Part shown: positions 2,995 through 64,000 of the stretch, piece after piece
Position numbering within the stretch: position 1 is the stretch's first letter
How the letters are laid out: every line of letters starts with the position of its first letter
Assembly: GCF_001447785.1 (NCBI RefSeq)
Contig: NW_015163678.1
Location: forward strand, 143,410 to 207,409
Source: Gekko japonicus
Taxonomy: Eukaryota
Length of the DNA: 64,000 nt
Direction of reading: 5' to 3'
Made by a program: the position numbers and the translations under genes
The notes under the pieces: model-generated
What the model was told of the DNA's origin: nothing
The model's database searches: none
The model's input: the letters and a program-made list of their open reading frames with translations, nothing else

Positions 2995-3512
2995 NNNNNN
3001 NNNNNNNNNNNNNNNNNNNNNNNNNNNNNNNNNNNNNNNNNNNNNNNNNNNNNNNNNNNNNNNNNNNNNNNNNNNNNNNNNNNNNNNNNNNNNNNNNNNN
3101 NNNNNNNNNNNNNNNNNNNNNNNNNNNNNNNNNNNNNNNNNNNNNNNNNNNNNNNNNNNNNNNNNNNNNNNNNNNNNNNNNNNNNNNNNNNNNNNNNNNN
3201 NNNNNNNNNNNNNNNNNNNNNNNNNNNNNNNNNNNNNNNNNNNNNNNNNNNNNNNNNNNNNNNNNNNNNNNNNNNNNNNNNNNNNNNNNNNNNNNNNNNN
3301 NNNNNNNNNNNNNNNNNNNNNNNNNNNNNNNNNNNNNNNNNNNNNNNNNNNNNNNNNNNNNNNNNNNNNNNNNNNNNNNNNNNNNNNNNNNNNNNNNNNN
3401 NNNNNNNNNNNNNNNNNNNNNNNNNNNNNNNNNNNNNNNNNNNNNNNNNNNNNNNNNNNNNNNNNNNNNNNNNNNNNNNNNNNNNNNNNNNNNNNNNNNN
3501 NNNNNNNNNNNN
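2995..3512. other. Assembly gap (518 N) with a low-quality, homopolymer-rich right flank (3513-3600)
   Basis: Run of N; the ORFs spanning it are artefacts. Confidence 0.99.
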
Positions 3513-20737: not shown

Positions 20738-20998
20738 AGATAGTGGATTTATATACTCTGCCCTTCACTACCCAAAGGAGTCTCAAAGCAGCTTACAATC
20801 CCTTTCCCTTCCCCTCCCCACAACAGACCCTGTGAGGTAGGTGGGGCTGAGAGAGCTTTCTCGGGAACTGCCCTTGAGATAATAGCTCTGAAAGAACTTG
20901 TGACTGACTGACACCAGCAGCTGCATATGGAGGAGTGGGGAATCAAACCCAGTTCTCCCAGATTAGAGTCTGCGCTCCTAACCACTACACCAAACTGG
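20738..20998 (-). mobile_element. tRNA-derived SINE with an L2/MIR-like tail (related copies ~25158-25380, 48884-49280)
   Basis: Minus-strand head GCCAGTTTGGTGTAGTGGTTAGGAGCGCAGACTCTAATCTGGGAGAACTGGGTTTGATTCCCC (A/B boxes); shared body with the other copies. Confidence 0.75.
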
Positions 20999-36137: not shown

Positions 36138-36302
36138 AAGGATTATTATTTTTTTGTTGCAGGAGGCCACAGGTGGAAGGGAGAGAAGGGAAAGCACATT
36201 GCATGGCCTTACCTCCACTCTCACTGTTTTGGATCAAATCTGTTGTGTTTCTCTTCTGTACAATTACAGTAAAAGTTTTTTCTATTTTTTGTTCATTCAG
36301 TG
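36138..36302 (+). repeat. 165-bp direct repeat, left copy (putative long target-site duplication of the L1)
   Basis: AAGGATTATTATTTTTTTGTTGCAGG...GTTCATTCAGTG, identical by eye to 42199-42363 (offset 6061). Confidence 0.93.
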
Positions 36303-37008
36303 GTCCGTTTCCGGTCTTGCCGAGAGTGGACGCTCGCAGCTTTGCTGCCCGTCCATTGACTTTCTAATTGTCTTCTGGAGGAGAATTTACCACTCTCCCC
36401 CAATTTTCTCTCCTCGGAGGGGAGAGAGAGAAGCAAGGGGCTTCATTCCCAACCCAAAGTGAAGGCAGGCAACCTTTCTTGGAACTGGGAAAACGCCTCA
36501 ACGCGGGAGACCATAGAACGCCCGACGCTAGACGACGAGCTCAAGACACGACCAGAGGGAAACGAAGAGAGTTACCCAACAACAGAGAAAACACTGGACC
36601 ACCGAAGCTAAGTACCCCAATATCTTTAGAAAAATAGAACTAATTGTTGGCAGTAGTTATAAACCATAAAACCTTAACTAAACCGAAAAGTGAAAACCGA
36701 ACAAAGTAAAAGGGGACAGGTTCCCTTTAATTGGCCACAGCTGTTGCATCGGTCAAAGTAACACTAAAAAGAACCGGTTTAAAAAAAACAAACACGGAGT
36801 GATGTAACTCTGTTTGCTTTAAAGTAGATTACAGTAATCTTCAATCTAATAGCTTTAAATAATTACTTTAACTACTTCCACTAAAACGACTAGCTAGAAC
36901 CTGATTTTTTCTTTTTCTTTCTCTTCCCTCGTCCTTGGTGCAGAGACGGTCGGGCGGAGCGGCGGAGCTGTGGAGCTGTGGAGCTGCCGGGAAGTCAGAG
37001 AGGCGTTT

Positions 37009-37071
37009 GGATCGCGGAGGCGGCCGAGCGGATCGCGGAGGCGGCTGAGCGGATCGCGGAGGCGGCCGAGC
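37009..37071 (+). repeat. 3 x 21-bp tandem GGATCGCGGAGGCGGCYGAGC in the L1 5'UTR CpG island
   Basis: Units at 37009, 37030 and 37051; preceded by (GGAGCTGT)-like x3 at ~36964-36987. Confidence 0.92.
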
Positions 37072-37593
37072 TGGGCGGCGGTGCTCCGGCGGAGGAGTGG
37101 GCGGAGCTCGGAGCCGGTGACGCAACAGGGACGACGCAAACGGTGGCAGACAGAGTGGGGAATCAGACGTCAGCCTAAAACGCCGGCGCGTGCCTGCGTG
37201 TGCGTGTGCGCAGCAGCAAAGGAAGCAGAGGAACACCAGGTGAACGGTGCTAGGACCCAGAACGCTAGCCCGTCCAACAGAGCAGAGCAGAGCAGCGAAC
37301 GAAGAAGAAAGAGAATTGAGAAGAGGATGTTTAAAAGGGAAAAGCCTTAGAACTTAGTAGAAGCCTGGCTGATTTGAAAGACAAAAGTAGAGACAACCTG
37401 TTTAAGAGTCAGAAACGTTTTGATATATTGACAAAAATAGAAAGAACTGTCATATATAAATAATTGTATTTCTGATCTGGGGGAGAGAAAAATATACCTA
37501 TCTATAATTATATAATTAGTGCTAAATCAAAAATAAGGGTCTAGAGACAAAGGTTACTAGGGCCCAGAGATAAAGATCTGAAAAAAGTAGTAA

Positions 37594-38757
37594 ATGGCCA
37601 CCGGAGGCAGTGGCCCTAGAAAAAGCTCGCTAACTTCACCTGGCCAGGCTAGCGGCCAAACCCAATTAAAGTTTGGAACAATGAGCTCAGGACAGACACA
37701 AAGTAAAGAAATGAAAAGTCTAATCAAAGACATAGTAGAACAAACTACCAAACATATTTTAGACTCTGCATTACCGGATCTATTTAAAAAAGAAATTGAA
37801 CCTTTACAAGCATCAATGAGTGAAATGATAAAACAGGGTTTAGAACCAATACAAAAAAATATATCTGAAATTTCACAACAAATGAAAACAGATAGGGAAG
37901 AAATAAAAGCAGATATGGAGGAAATTAAAAAGCAAATAATTGAAAACAAGCAAGAAATTATGAAATTAGCTACAGATAATGCAGGCCTAGAAGACAAACT
38001 CCAAGAGCTAGATCAAGAAGTCTATGATCTAAAACACACCACAGGCAAGTTGGAGGAAACCTTGATGAATTTGGAACTAGACAAGGCAGCCTTGGTCATT
38101 AGATGCCAGAATGTTCCAGAAACTATAGAAAAAAACCTAAAAGAAGAACTCATAGAAAATATATCTCAACAACTAAAAGTAGGTACTTATGAAGAAATAG
38201 AAAAAGAAGTAGAGGCAATTTATAGAAAAAACACAGCCTTCTCAAGAAGAAATAAAACCCCAAGAGAGGTACAAATAAAATTTAGTAGACGACAGATGAG
38301 AGATAAAATCTTGAAGGCCTCTAACGAAACAACGATTAAGATAAACGAAACAGAGATAAAAATTTTGAAAGACGTACCGTGGAGAATTAGAGAGAAAAGG
38401 CAAACATACTATACTTTGACAGATTTATTAAGAACAAACAATATTCCCTATAGATGGCTCCTTCCAGAAGGAATACTATTTACACTCAAGGGGAAAAGAT
38501 TTAAAATAGACTCCATATTTAAAGTGCAATTTTTTTTGGAAAATCATGGAGAAGACCTTGGTTGGCAAGGAGAAAGAGAGGAGGAAAGTGGAAAATCTAG
38601 TGAATCAGGTGAAGATGAAAATGAACCCAAAGAAGAACAAGGAAAGGAAACTCAGAAAAAAGATAAACGGAGAAGAGCTTATCCTGTGCCATTACATGTG
38701 GTTACGAGATACAGAGCGAGGTTAAACAAGACAACCAACCATTATGGAAAAAAGTAA
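37594..38757 (+). CDS. L1 ORF1p (387 aa; coiled coil, RRM/CTD-like region, acidic tail)
   Basis: Intact ORF with heptad-rich N-half, PREVQIKF / ILKDVPW / YRWLLPEG motifs typical of non-mammalian L1 ORF1; overlaps ORF2 by 14 nt. Confidence 0.9.
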   Translation: MATGGSGPRKSSLTSPGQASGQTQLKFGTMSSGQTQSKEMKSLIKDIVEQTTKHILDSALPDLFKKEIEPLQASMSEMIKQGLEPIQKNISEISQQMKTDREEIKADMEEIKKQIIENKQEIMKLATDNAGLEDKLQELDQEVYDLKHTTGKLEETLMNLELDKAALVIRCQNVPETIEKNLKEELIENISQQLKVGTYEEIEKEVEAIYRKNTAFSRRNKTPREVQIKFSRRQMRDKILKASNETTIKINETEIKILKDVPWRIREKRQTYYTLTDLLRTNNIPYRWLLPEGILFTLKGKRFKIDSIFKVQFFLENHGEDLGWQGEREEESGKSSESGEDENEPKEEQGKETQKKDKRRRAYPVPLHVVTRYRARLNKTTNHYGKK

Positions 38758-41434
38758 GAAGATCGATATCCTAACAATAAACGTTAATGGCCTAAATAGC
38801 CCTCAAAAACGGAGGCGAATTTATCACCAAATAAATAAATTAAAAGCTGAAATCATATGCCTACAGGAAACACATATACGAGAAGAAGATGCTAAATACT
38901 TAAACTCAAAAAAATTGGGGAAACTATTCTATGCAGCAGATAAAAAGAAAAAGAAAAAAGGAGTAGCCATATACGTCAAAGAACGTTGTAACCCAGAACT
39001 GGCCTTTACATCACCAGATGGTAGAATAATAGCAATAACTATAATTAGGAAAAACAAAAAAATGATGATAGTAAACATATATGCACCCAATCAGAATCAA
39101 GAAAAATTCTACAAATCCTTAAAAGAACTAATATCATTACAGTCTTTCGATGAACTCTGTGTAGTTGGTGACTTCAACGCAGTTTTTGAAACAAAAATAG
39201 ATAGGAGAAATACAGGGAAAAATAAAAAATGGGGTAATATACTTCCCAAATCCTTTTTAGAATTGGCTGAAGAACAAAACCTTGCAGATATCTGGAGAGT
39301 GAAAAATCTATATAAGAAGGACTTTACATTCTTTTCAAATAGACATAAATCATGGTCAAGAATCGACATGATTTGGGTATCAATCTCTCTAATTAACGAA
39401 GTACAAGATATAGAAATACTACCGTCTACATTCGCAGATCATAACACAATTAAGATGTCCGTACTAGGAACGTATAAGAAATTAAGATGGCATTTAAATA
39501 AAAGACTGATGAACAAAGAAAAATTTGTCAAAAAAACTAAAAACCACCTTAAAGAGTTCTTTGAAAATAACATCCAACCTGAATCGTCAATTCTAACAAC
39601 TTGGGATACCTTTAAAGCCTATTTGAGGGGTTTATTTATAACGGAAGACGCATGGGAGAAAAAACAGCGTAAAAATGAGTATACAAAATTAGTAAATTCA
39701 ATAAAGGAAGAAGAAGACAAAATGAAAGAAGGCAGATATAATGAACATCTCAAATCCAAACTGAATCTGCAACAACATAAATTAAATCTGATATTAACAC
39801 AGGAATTAGCCAGAAAACTGGAATATACAAAACAATATTTCTTCGAATATGCCAACAAACCCTCAAGATGGCTGGCATACAAATTAAAAAAGGAACAGGC
39901 GAAAAAATTGATTAAAATACTTAGAGATGAGAAACAAACGGAGAAAAATCTCAATAGTGAACTCAAAGAAATAGTTGAAAAATACTATGGGAAATTATAT
40001 CATCAAGAACCTCTTAATCCGCAGAAAATTAAAGACTACATAACAAGATGGAATAATAAGAAATTTGATGAAAATCAAAAGCGAATATTAAATAGCCCAA
40101 TATCAGTCACGGAAGTAATTGGAGCAATTAGAAATCAGAAGAAAAACAAAGCCCCAGGACCTGATAGTATACCAATAGAAGTATACCATAAATTTGAAGA
40201 ACAACTTTTGCTCCCACTTAAAGATGTTATATACGAGATTATACAAGGGGGAGTAATGCCCCAATCTTGGAAGGAAGCATCGATTACTCTAATACATAAA
40301 CCAAATACAGACACAAAAGAAATCCAAAACTACAGACCAATCTCATTACTTAATGCCGATTATAAAATCTACGCAGCAATAGTCACATCCAGATTGAAAA
40401 AGGTATTAATAGAAATAATCCACCAAGACCAAACAGGATTTCTCCCAAAAAGACAAATGAAAAGCAATATAAGGGTGATTATGAATGTGTTGGAATATTA
40501 CGAACAACAGCCTGGGAAACAACTGGCGCTAATCTTTTTAGACGCCGAAAAGGCATTTGATAGAGTTAATTGGAACTTCATACTACAAAAACTAGCAAGT
40601 TGGGACTGTGGAGAAACCTTTTACACCATGGTTCGAGCGATCTATTCAGAACAATTTGCAAAAGTAATAGTGAATGGTGAATCAACACAAAGTGTTCCAA
40701 TTCAAAAAGGCACGAGACAAGGCTGTCCGTTGTCACCTTTATTATTTATCTTTACATTAGAAACTTTAACAGACTTAATAAGAGCCAACAATTTAATAAA
40801 AGGTCTGAAGATCAAAGACCAAGTCTATAAGTTGCAAGCATTTGCTGATGATTTGGCCTTCATTGTTGAGGAGCCGATGGAATCCATTCCAGTTTTGATG
40901 AAAGTAATCGAGAGTTATGGAGAAGTAGCAGGTCTAAAAATAAATTATAAGAAAACAAATATGTTAACCAAAAACTGTACATTACCTCAAATCGAACAAT
41001 TAGAAAAGTTGACTCATATAAACACGGTCACTAAAGTCAAATACTTGGGGATAATCATGTCTAAAAGAAATAATACATTAATTGAAGATAATTATGTTAA
41101 ACTACTAAAAGAAATAAGAAAAGACCTGGAAACATGGGAGAAATTACACTTATCCTTTATGGGAAAAATTGCGGCACTAAAGATGAATGTATTACCGAAA
41201 TTTTTGTTCCTAGCACAGAATATCCCAGTTCTGAGAAATCTTAAAATATTCAATGAATTAGATAAGATTTGTAGAAAGTTCATATGGGCGAATAAACCAG
41301 CACGTATTAAATGGAAGGTATTGCAGGACCAAAAAGAAAGGGGAGGCTTAGGAATCCCCAACTGGAAACTTTATTATACAGCGGCAGCAATGACTTGGAT
41401 AAAAGATTGGGTTACTATGAGAAGAATGACTTAG
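38744..41434 (+). CDS. L1 ORF2p N-terminal part (APE endonuclease + reverse transcriptase), truncated by a frameshift
   Basis: INVNGLN, LQETH, GDFN, SRIDMIW and ADH (APE); NYRPISLLN, LDAEKAFD, GTRQGCPLSP, FADD and YLGI (RT). Confidence 0.93.
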   Translation: MEKSKKIDILTINVNGLNSPQKRRRIYHQINKLKAEIICLQETHIREEDAKYLNSKKLGKLFYAADKKKKKKGVAIYVKERCNPELAFTSPDGRIIAITIIRKNKKMMIVNIYAPNQNQEKFYKSLKELISLQSFDELCVVGDFNAVFETKIDRRNTGKNKKWGNILPKSFLELAEEQNLADIWRVKNLYKKDFTFFSNRHKSWSRIDMIWVSISLINEVQDIEILPSTFADHNTIKMSVLGTYKKLRWHLNKRLMNKEKFVKKTKNHLKEFFENNIQPESSILTTWDTFKAYLRGLFITEDAWEKKQRKNEYTKLVNSIKEEEDKMKEGRYNEHLKSKLNLQQHKLNLILTQELARKLEYTKQYFFEYANKPSRWLAYKLKKEQAKKLIKILRDEKQTEKNLNSELKEIVEKYYGKLYHQEPLNPQKIKDYITRWNNKKFDENQKRILNSPISVTEVIGAIRNQKKNKAPGPDSIPIEVYHKFEEQLLLPLKDVIYEIIQGGVMPQSWKEASITLIHKPNTDTKEIQNYRPISLLNADYKIYAAIVTSRLKKVLIEIIHQDQTGFLPKRQMKSNIRVIMNVLEYYEQQPGKQLALIFLDAEKAFDRVNWNFILQKLASWDCGETFYTMVRAIYSEQFAKVIVNGESTQSVPIQKGTRQGCPLSPLLFIFTLETLTDLIRANNLIKGLKIKDQVYKLQAFADDLAFIVEEPMESIPVLMKVIESYGEVAGLKINYKKTNMLTKNCTLPQIEQLEKLTHINTVTKVKYLGIIMSKRNNTLIEDNYVKLLKEIRKDLETWEKLHLSFMGKIAALKMNVLPKFLFLAQNIPVLRNLKIFNELDKICRKFIWANKPARIKWKVLQDQKERGGLGIPNWKLYYTAAAMTWIKDWVTMRRMT

Positions 41435-42093
41435 ACAAATTATGGCTTTCTACAAATGACAAATTAATACAGAAACTGTATAAATTACTTCTGGTAAACT
41501 ATGAGCTAGATGAGGAGGTAAAAAGCTGTATGATCACTTGGATGCAAGATTTTGGTTACATCATTGAAGATTGGTCCAAAGTATGGGTCGCTGCAAAATA
41601 CCTGAGATCTATTCCCTATAAGGAAAATCTATTTAAAATGTGCCATCGCTGGCATTGGTCACCGGACAAACTAGCAAAATGCTATCCAACTTTGTCAAAA
41701 AATTGTTGGAAGTGTAAAAATAACGTAGGCACCTTCTACCACATGTGGTGGAGGTGCACTGAGACCCAAAGATATTGGCATAAAGTACACAAAATGTTAG
41801 GTGACATACTAGAAATTGAGATACCATATACACCAGAATTTTTTCTGTTAAATGTAATGCCAGAAAAATATAAGAAGGAAGAAAAATATGTTATAGGATA
41901 TATTGTCACTGCAGCACGTATTTTGTTTGCCAAGAATTGGAAACAAGGGGGAATACCGTGTAAAAAAGATTTAATCTTTAAAATACAGGAAGTGATTGAA
42001 ATGGACAAGTTAACCACATTGTTACAATACAATGATACAATGATATTTTCTAATAGGTGGGGAAAGTTTTACAAATGGTTTAAGAAGATGTAA
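41416..42093 (+). pseudogene. L1 ORF2p C-terminal part (CCHC zinc knuckle), out of frame with the upstream part
   Basis: CWKCKNNVGTFYHMWWRC; homologous to the fragment at 331-920; frame change at ~41416-41423. Confidence 0.85.
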
Positions 42094-42198
42094 GAAACTA
42101 AACGAGATGTTGTGGAATTCTGTAATGGTTATATCAAGTTGTAGAACATATATGCATGATGTAATGCATTTTAAAACTGAAATAAATATATATTTAGG

Positions 42199-42363
42199 AA
42201 GGATTATTATTTTTTTGTTGCAGGAGGCCACAGGTGGAAGGGAGAGAAGGGAAAGCACATTGCATGGCCTTACCTCCACTCTCACTGTTTTGGATCAAAT
42301 CTGTTGTGTTTCTCTTCTGTACAATTACAGTAAAAGTTTTTTCTATTTTTTGTTCATTCAGTG
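42199..42363 (+). repeat. 165-bp direct repeat, right copy
   Basis: Matches 36138-36302. Confidence 0.93.
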
Positions 42364-43361
42364 AACAAATAAATTAAACGAGTGAGATAATTTATGTTTT
42401 TATATATCATTACTCCATTGCTAAAAAGAGAACACATTTCAGAAGTGTGACGTTCGGGGGGGGGGGGGGGTTGTTACTTAAAAAGAAAAAATGTAGACAC
42501 TATCAATGTTTCCAGGCAGGGCTTTCTTGTCCACTGAAATTAAGTAGAATTTACCTGTAGTTTTACTATGGTATAAGCAAGAGTGAACCCCACCCCCCCA
42601 AACAGAAATGATGCAGAAGAATACATCAGAACTGGAAAGAAAAGCAAACTTTCCCCAAACTGATGCAGAACTTCAGAAACTTCTGTCTGAAAAGGAATCT
42701 CTCATGAAGGCAGCTCTCAAGAGAACTGTCAGAAGTTCAAAAACTTCTACATGTCAGATGATCCAACAAAAATGTAATCACTTCACCAGGGAAAAGAAAA
42801 AAGTTCGAAACATGAAAAGCAAATGTTGCAGCTTGAAAGAGAAGAGACCCTGTTAAAATAATTAGTATGCAGAGGGAACAGAATATTTAATACAAAGAAA
42901 GCAGCCTAGCGTTTCATCCTTATGTTTTTGGTAATCTTACAAAATGTATAGCATTAGAAAGCTTTCAGGCGCTACTAAAGTTCTGGCGTCAGAATCAGCC
43001 ACGTGCCAGTTTGTCTTCAAATGCACAATATGGATGAAATTATAATTGTGTTACAATACAGCAAGTAAAACTCCCCACTTTTCTCAGGTCCATTTGCCTT
43101 GAATGTAAGAGTGGAAAGGCAGGCAGGACCTGAATGTTCTGGATAACAAGGGGTGATGCAAGGCCAATATGTCTCACTTCCCTTTTTCAGCTGCTGCTGT
43201 GCTCCACAAAGAACTGAGCCCTACACTCCAGTTATAACCTCAGAAACATCTTCTCTTCCTCCTCCAGGTCATCACTTGATTTCTTAGTCTGTGAACCCAG
43301 GCATCAGCTGTTATTTCCCACTCTGGTTGCTGGCATGGTAATTTTTGGTGGACCTATAAGG

Positions 43362-62014: not shown

Positions 62015-64000
62015 GTAGGTGACCATATTGGGCTGCAACTGCAAGCGACTGGAAATGCAGTTTAACTTATGGCACAGTTTTCTGACTCGAACCATGTATT
62101 GTGGTACTTTAATGCTGTTTTCTGTTAGAATGTCTAGACTGTGTTTCTAGGAACTGGATTTAAAGCACGTAGGAGATGGTTGCATTAGAATGCTAGTATT
62201 AAAAGTCTTGGTCATGAAATCATGTTTTGTGCTTTACCTTGTCAGTGTGTAGTTTTTTTCAAGCCATATATTGTAAGCATCTGTCCGGTTTTCTAAAATC
62301 TTCTTGCGGTGGGGGAACACAGGTAACCATATCACTGTACATAGTTTGTGTGAAAGCCAGGAGGGTGTGAGCCCCCTGACCTCATCAGGCAGGCCATCAC
62401 AGGGCCATGACAGGGAATACACATGTATGGTCATGACCACATGAAGCTGCCTTATACTGAATCAGCCCCTCAGTCCATCAAAGTCCGTATTGTCTGCGCA
62501 GACTGGCAGGAGCTCTCCAGGGGCTCAGGCAGAGGTCTTTCTCGTTACCTACTGCCAGATCCATTAACTGGACAAGCCAGAGATTGAACCTGGGATCTTC
62601 TGCATGCCAAGCAGATGCTCTGCACTGAGCCACAACCCCTCCAAGTTGTGGGCAGTTGTGGATTTTGCCCATTTTCAGGTTGGCCTCCGCAGGAGGCCCT
62701 GCTATTGAAGACCAAACTTGCTTGCTCAGTGCAGTGAGGTTGTTCCAGCTGGAATTGATGAGGGCAGCTTTTTTTGTTTGTTCAGAGCTATAACACTCCC
62801 CCCCTCTTCACTTACGAAGAGCAGTGGTGTTGGCACTAAGTCATTGCTGTCCTAATGCTGATAAAGCTGCCAAACATTTATCTGGCTTTTGATTCAGTGC
62901 GTTGGCAAAAATATAATGACAGCATGTCGCATGGAGCATTTTACTCTTTGCTGCTGTGAAATGGATGATACTATTAGTCACGTGTTCTGTAGCTGATCTC
63001 TTTAAAACTTCACCATTGTTCCTGTTATTTTCCAATATTGTGTCTGTTGTAAAAGTCCAAATTCAGGAAAGAGGCAATATGATTGAGTTTTGAACAAGAC
63101 TTGTCTTCTGTGTGCATTTTTTTAGGAAATATTTATACTGTCTTCACAATGCTCAGAAAACAAAATTGAACAGGGGAAGAGGACAAAATTGCTTTTTGCT
63201 CTCTCTTCTGTTAGCAGAGTCGCACTGGTGGAAGAGGCAGAAATGGCAGCTTTTGTTCCCTTCCCACTCCCCACTAGGGGATGGGCACGAACCGCATTTT
63301 GGTGGTTAGAATCAAGGTGGAACCATGAACTTAAACGAACAGGGAGGTTGGTTCACGAACTGAACTGATTTGTATTAGTTCTTGACCCCTGCTTTCTGCT
63401 CCCCGTGAAAAACAGCTGAGCAGCAGGGAGCAGAAAGCTCCCCATGCTTTCTGCTCCCCACTGCTCAGGTTTTTTTGTGAAGAGCAGGAAGTAGGGGTTT
63501 ATGGCTTGGAGCCATTTAAATCCCTGCTTTCTGCTCTTCACATAACTGCCATAAAATTTGTGGAAGTTTGTGGTGGCTCTTCAATTTGCAAACATTGCTT
63601 CACAAACCATAAGCCAGCAAAAATTTGTCACAAACTTTTGTTCATGAGCCAGTTCATGCCCATCCGAACTCCCTACTGCAGCCTTCCAGCCTACATGGCT
63701 ATTAGGTTATGCAAGTCCCATGACCCACAGGAGCAAACTTTCCAGGGTTTGGAAAAGACTGCTGGGTTGGAGAGGGATGTGAGAAAGGTCTATGCTTGTA
63801 AGCACCTTCCCTGGTGACTTGTGGGATCCAACCCTTTGACTGGTATTGTGTCTTTTGGTTATGTTTCTAACTAGTTTTTTGAAACAAAGCATTTTTGGGG
63901 GGAAGTGAAATCTTGAACAGAAAAATATAGTAGTGGACCTCCCTCCCCCAGTCATTGCTATGTAGGATTCAAGACACAAATATCTTTTCCCTGTTGCCAG

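Follow-up and report, generated by a model that had tools for sequence, protein, structure and literature searches.

L1 retrotransposons integrate through target-primed reverse transcription (TPRT), which in its canonical form starts from a nick at TT/AAAA, is primed on poly(A) and yields a target site duplication (TSD) of 7-20 bp (PMC7617806). In the human L1 TPRT complex studied by cryo-EM, top-strand nicks by the endonuclease fall at a distance of 7, 11 or 19 nt, and the endonuclease (EN) domain is modelled at about 20 nt from the first nick (PMC7617806). The way in which L1 insertion opens the second strand is still debated, with the element's own endonuclease acting within about 20 nt on the one side and DNA ends from host replication or repair on the other. 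Full-length human L1s nearly always have TSDs of 10-20 bp, and the extremely long TSDs found in HeLa cells accompanied 5'-truncated inserts (Kojima, PMC2912911; Yamaguchi et al., PMC4245944). A first reading of the locus described here, made from the sequence only, had stated that L1 TSDs are normally about 7-20 bp long and that long L1 ones are known from rare events in cultured cells, which agrees with these studies (PMC2912911, PMC4245944, PMC7617806, PMC5223499).

The best described long-TSD insertions come from engineered human elements in cell lines. TSDs of more than 100 bp never exceed 10% of the human L1 inserts in HeLa cells, but in cells deficient in nucleotide excision repair (NER), with a defect in XPA, XPC or XPD, they are present in 57-91% of the inserts, and tailless inserts are more frequent as well (Servant et al., PMC5223499). 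In the model proposed there, the insertion is completed from a distal, unrelated nick or from a replication/repair end (PMC5223499). Human L1 inserts with large TSDs, sometimes tailless, are also on record for HeLa and HCT116 cells (the Gilbert and Symer studies, as they are cited in PMC5223499). The tailless long-TSD L1 insertion is a rare kind, so far mainly from cultured human cells. The literature searched contained no description of long TSDs at reptilian L1 insertions, which is not proof of absence.

Long TSDs are also found outside the L1 clade. Gladyshev and Arkhipova reportedly described in 2009 a 126-bp TSD for the R9 element of bdelloid rotifers. R9 belongs to the R2 type, inserts specifically into rDNA and encodes a restriction-like endonuclease; its TSD is fixed and identical in all copies. 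Endonuclease-independent or non-classical L1 insertions, which occur at pre-existing breaks, usually have no TSD or delete target DNA, and they are often 3'-truncated.

Here we describe an L1 copy from Gekko japonicus that lies between two perfect 165-bp direct repeats, in a stretch of 64 kb that was analyzed as a whole (the window). It most likely represents a single insertion in which the second strand was broken 165 bp from the first nick.

The repeat pair and the element between its copies

The coordinates of the locus are given in Table 1.

Table 1. Features of the L1 locus, in positions of the window; a slash marks a break or a junction.
Feature	Position	Strand	Description
Upstream copy of the putative TSD	36138..36302		left edge 36137/36138 as first (bottom-strand) nick, top-strand context CCTTC/AAGGAT
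L1-clade non-LTR retrotransposon	36303..42198	+	5,896 bp, colinear, no 5' inversion
5'UTR	36303..37593	+	1,291 bp, GC 0.48, CpG o/e 0.97, CpG-rich core 36903-37302
ORF1	37594..38757	+	387 aa, open
ORF2, first piece	38744..41434	+	896 aa; predicted APE endonuclease ~38771-39451, reverse transcriptase ~40292-41056
ORF2 break	41410..41425	+	apparent junction of an internal deletion, ~121 codons, with frame change
ORF2, C-terminal piece	41410..42093	+	other frame, cysteine-rich C-terminal segment
3'UTR	42094..42198	+	105 bp; AATAAA at 42181-42186, then 12 nt
Downstream copy of the putative TSD	42199..42363		right edge 42363/42364 as second (top-strand) break, context CAGTG/AACAAA

The two repeat copies, which start 6061 bp apart, are identical at 165/165 positions, as found by a repeat search and by blastn of the element against the window. 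A chance origin of this match is out of the question, and the same blastn search yielded no third copy of the 165-mer in the 64-kb window. Both copies directly adjoin the L1, with a 5' junction that reads ...CAGTG/GTCCGTTTCC (in a longer form ...TTCATTCAGTG/GTCCGTTTCCGG) and a 3' junction that reads ...ATATTTAGG/AAGGATT (in a longer form ...AATAAATATATATTTAGG/AAGGATTATT). The sequence-only reading, which had identified identical 165-bp repeats exactly abutting the element, is upheld on this point. Neither a short TSD nor a poly(A) tail was seen outside both repeats.

The break sites in Table 1 were derived by rebuilding the empty site from both junctions. In this rebuilt site the top-strand break is placed 165 nt downstream of the first nick. 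The first nick (TC/AAGG) agrees with TT/AAAA at 4/6 positions and gives a priming end ...CCTT-3'.

The sequence around the breaks has two further features. The 165-mer begins with a polypyrimidine tract followed by CAG/G (36150-36200), resembling a splice acceptor, with the acceptor-like tract at 36150-36163; if this is an exon edge, the insertion duplicated that edge. A homopolymer of 14 G (42457-42470) is located 95 nt downstream of the TSD and is 3 letters shorter in one contig of the public run X1 (see below), this tract being length-variable or error-prone.

Between the repeats lies an insert that we classify as an L1, since its ORF2 is colinear with L1 ORF2p and comprises an N-terminal APE endonuclease, a reverse transcriptase domain and a C-terminal segment rich in cysteine. 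ORF2, whose first 14 nt overlap the ORF1 end, matches both Pfam PF03372 (APE endonuclease) and PF00078 (RVT_1). Its first piece is colinear with residues 6-885 of human ORF2p (E 1.4e-149 against solved structures) and aligns with residues 33-920 of a Varanus L1 ORF2 at 47% identity. The last piece (260 aa) matches human ORF2p residues 1047-1249 (E 1.2e-13) and aligns with residues 1042-1271 of the Varanus protein. In the protein database search, the nearest proteins to ORF2 are squamate L1 ORF2s with a size between 1240 and 1275 aa, from Varanus komodoensis (47% identity), Anolis carolinensis (40-44%) and Podarcis (40%). As the nearest proteins are only 40-47% identical, this L1 family itself is absent from the protein collection. 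ORF1 weakly matches the RNA-binding domain of L1 ORF1p (PF02994; E 0.0017, 19.1 bits, under the 22.4-bit cut-off) and to human ORF1p structures (E 7e-6 to 1e-5, residues 132-306), and the protein database search gave no ORF1 homologue at E<=1e-20. The CpG-rich core of the 5'UTR contains three 21-bp tandem units (37009-37071; GGATCGCGGAGGCGGCCGAGC) and a degenerate fourth one at 37103, which may be promoter monomers. When metagenome contigs were scanned for exact copies of the terminal 24 nt at the L1 3' end, 0 matches were obtained.

Residues 921-1041 of the Varanus ORF2 have no counterpart in this L1, a gap that corresponds to a single deletion with a length that is not a multiple of three. 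The copy had initially been called full-length. This seems to hold for its ends (the 1.29-kb CpG-rich 5'UTR, the 387-aa ORF1 and the 3'UTR with AATAAA) but not for ORF2, which lacks about 121 codons, and the copy is therefore better described as having apparently complete ends but a defective ORF2. Since the TSD is still perfect, the deletion was most likely carried by the inserted RNA beforehand, although it possibly arose during or after insertion. If it was already present in the RNA, the copy was probably mobilised by the proteins of another L1.

The 3' end is tailless. The L1 stops 12 nt past AATAAA, roughly where transcript cleavage would occur, and there is no poly(A) or A run at this end: the TSD starts directly, and the first two A of the duplication are the most that could be shared with a tail. 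The window contains a second L1 sequence at 410-1121, the 3' portion of a 5'-truncated L1 that belongs to another family and has 44-46% protein identity to the ORF2 tail of the element. This fragment has a longer 3'UTR in which AATAAA is followed by 8 nt and then A12, and ordinary tails therefore do occur in this genome. The lack of poly(A) is a property of this insertion, not necessarily of its L1 family.

A recent insertion is supported by the state of the repeats and of the 5'UTR. The CpG o/e of the 5'UTR (0.97) contrasts with that of the flanks (0.08 and 0.22) and of the 165-bp repeat (0), indicating that the CpGs of the 5'UTR have not decayed. The 0 differences over 165 bp correspond to a 95% age bound of about 4.5-12 My, a loose bound that depends on an assumed 0.77-2e-9 substitutions/site/year. 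In the public runs, contigs with 0-1 differences per 100-140 nt from this copy have 2-5x the depth of the flank, so a few near-identical siblings exist. The perfect TSD, the undecayed CpGs and these siblings all bear out the earlier description of the element as young.

Other direct-repeat pairs in the window were rejected as long TSDs. The pairs at 20924/25324 and 46667/49902 (45-48 bp, 89%) are interspersed SINE-type copies, which span 20880-21010/25280-25410 and 46620-46760/49855-49995, respectively; one of these pairs looks like a tRNA-derived SINE. The only Rfam match in the window, a tRNA match of 45.9 bits on the minus strand (62569-62639), is not called by ARAGORN and probably represents a SINE head derived from a tRNA. 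The 518 N at 2995-3512 are either an assembly gap or a masked stretch.

Read depth at the 3' junction and the origin of the repeats

Whether the L1 family carries the 165-mer was analyzed with two contig runs (X1, X2) and two raw WGS runs (X12, X13) of the same species, placed on 41500-43000 at 90% likeness. At least two studies contributed the four runs, and the sample used for the assembly may be X1 or X2. In all four, the L1 3' end has a depth of about 15-40x that of the flank and the repeat a depth of about 1-3x, with the step exactly at 42199; this step is seen in short reads only, none of which can span 165 bp, and none of the reads and contigs listed bridges either junction. Word depth in the contig runs is about 700-28,000 over the 3' part of the L1, with 2067 (X1) and 2015 (X2) in its final bin (42163-42213). 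Inside the repeat, it is 73 (X1) or 205 and then 104 (X2), and in the downstream flank 64 (X1) or 52-54 (X2). With the raw reads of X12 and X13, most bins of the L1 have a depth of about 5-13 (median about 7), compared with 0.4-2 for the repeat and 0-1 for the flank. Run X2 has a hole at 42316-42468 and a repeat depth of about 2-4x the flank, and a third copy of the 165-mer somewhere else in X2 is possible.

The contigs of X1 give the neighbours of the repeat. A contig of 1,522 nt spans exactly 42199-42363 with 0 differences and then enters sequence unlike the L1 3' end. A second contig begins at 42334, 30 nt before the repeat end, and enters the downstream flank. Logan contigs are built with k=31, and the 30-nt (k-1) overlap at the repeat end thus indicates two different right-hand neighbours of the repeat in the reads.

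It follows from the depth step that the numerous copies of this 3'UTR are not followed by the 165-mer. The latter is low-copy host DNA, with a depth as expected for two copies. These data refute the alternative offered in the sequence-only reading, an element-borne terminal repeat, since the 3' end is multi-copy, the 165-mer is not, and the step lies at 42199. A variant of the same idea is that a 165-bp 5'-truncated copy precedes the full copy head-to-tail. Head-to-tail arrays and terminal repeats occur in some non-LTR elements, and without poly(A) at 42198 the 3' end of the element could in principle lie beyond this position. However, X1 and X2 show a 10- to 30-fold fall in depth precisely at 42199 (with a similar step in X12 and X13), AATAAA is located just 12 nt before 42198, no TSD or tail is present outside the repeats, and the repeat is flank-like in its CpG o/e, unlike the 5'UTR. 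We therefore regard an element-borne 165-mer, in either form, as highly implausible. The absence of a tail and TSD outside the repeats also led us to reject retroposition of the repeat-L1-repeat structure as one unit with a 5' or 3' transduction. An LTR-like reading was rejected as well, given that the coding content is that of a non-LTR element and the repeat is not multi-copy.

An origin of the repeat pair independent of the L1 would be a tandem 165-bp duplication that already existed and received the L1 at its junction, or recombination or gene conversion. It demands a junction-precise insertion without a TSD of its own and two copies that stayed identical, and it is far less parsimonious than staggered breaks. 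Such a history is barely conceivable.

An assembly artefact would mean that the assembler made the second 165 bp or misplaced the L1, for example by a haplotype merge. The two copies are identical, so reads are not assignable to either one, and the best-matching runs may derive from the very sample that was assembled. Against this, a mis-join would yield adjacent tandem copies and not an L1 with a full copy at each end; the edges of the repeat are exactly where contigs from short reads end or switch to another context; and the repeat depth exceeds that of the flank in 4/4 runs from at least two studies. An artefact is accordingly very improbable, if slightly less so than the two preceding explanations.

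The explanation that we prefer is that the 165-bp repeats are single-copy host DNA that was duplicated upon insertion of the L1, i.e., a long TSD, to which we assign a probability of about 0.8. The main claim of the sequence-only reading, a TSD from two breaks 165 bp apart, is thereby supported: the repeat is exact, is present at both ends and is not borne by the family.

Proposed course of the insertion and comparison with known systems

An insertion that leaves such a long TSD could proceed as follows. The bottom strand would be opened at CCTTC/AAGGAT, and its 3' end (...CCTT) would prime reverse transcription at the extreme end of the L1 RNA, 12 nt past AATAAA, without copying of a poly(A). 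The top strand would be opened 165 nt downstream, at CAGTG/AACAAA, and the two breaks would leave long 3' overhangs, each carrying the 165 nt. The cDNA would extend to the 5' end of the RNA and then be joined to the top-strand end, and filling in of both overhangs would give the two 165-bp copies. Given the EN reach of about 20 nt, the distal break at 165 nt is probably not the usual second nick within the complex. It may be a separate event, made by a second ORF2p or a host nuclease, or represent a replication/repair DNA end.

Compared with canonical L1 TPRT (PMC7617806), the locus has the same element class and domain order and shares the break polarity that gives a duplication, the AATAAA at the 3' end and a pyrimidine-pyrimidine/AA nick core (TC/AA). 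It differs in a TSD that is about 10x longer, in the poly(A) that was not copied and in a nick that follows the consensus at 4/6 positions.

The large-TSD class of human L1 inserts in culture is more similar. Both concern L1-clade elements with a duplication of more than 100 bp, no poly(A) and a break past the reach of about 20 nt. The difference lies in the setting, which is the germline of a wild squamate genome here and an engineered element in a cell line there. Moreover, the extremely long TSDs in HeLa cells belong to 5'-truncated inserts, but this copy appears to retain the whole 5' region. Judged from its sequence, a whole 5' region inside a 165-bp TSD is an unusual combination. The locus appears to be a natural member of the tailless long-TSD L1 class, and the work on NER-deficient human cultures comes closest to describing it.

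The similarity to R9 is limited to a non-LTR element with a TSD of more than 100 bp. The element described here is an L1 of the APE type that lies outside rDNA, and other copies do not share the sequence of its TSD; an Rfam search found no rRNA in the 64-kb window. With endonuclease-independent insertions, the copy shares the lack of poly(A) and the poor match to the endonuclease consensus, but it differs from them in its complete 3'UTR and its large duplication.

Possible recurrence of the route and biological meaning

The locus could also be one outcome of a second L1 route that recurs in this squamate. In such a route, the second break would lie about a nucleosome or an Okazaki fragment away, priming would not use poly(A), and the products would be TSDs that form a 120-170-bp class, with longer ones trailing off to about 1 kb. 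This would be a broader form of the phasing idea in the sequence-only reading, which had suggested an undescribed chromatin-phased integration mechanism for the family if other copies share the length, an idea that the present data do not support. The tailless 3' end of this copy is in line with a recurrent route. On the other hand, one locus yields one length, which bears equally on a phasing of the second break by the chromatosome; the large TSDs in human cells have broad lengths that are set by the position of the distal nick (PMC5223499); and the L1 fragment at 410-1121 bears an ordinary A12 tail. A recurrent route is therefore doubtful, though a good deal less so than an artefact of assembly.

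Insertions that are natural and unmutated and that combine a very long TSD with a missing poly(A) are clean records of a non-standard route of insertion. The locus shows such a route in the germline of a reptile, on an element that appears to retain its full 5' end. The perfect 165-bp direct repeat is, in addition, a substrate for later recombination that would delete the L1. If the route were recurrent, the species would be a natural system for the choice of a distal second break, and it would also give rise to small segmental duplications, some of them of exons. Data from natural genomes would then bear on the manner and the place of second-strand opening.
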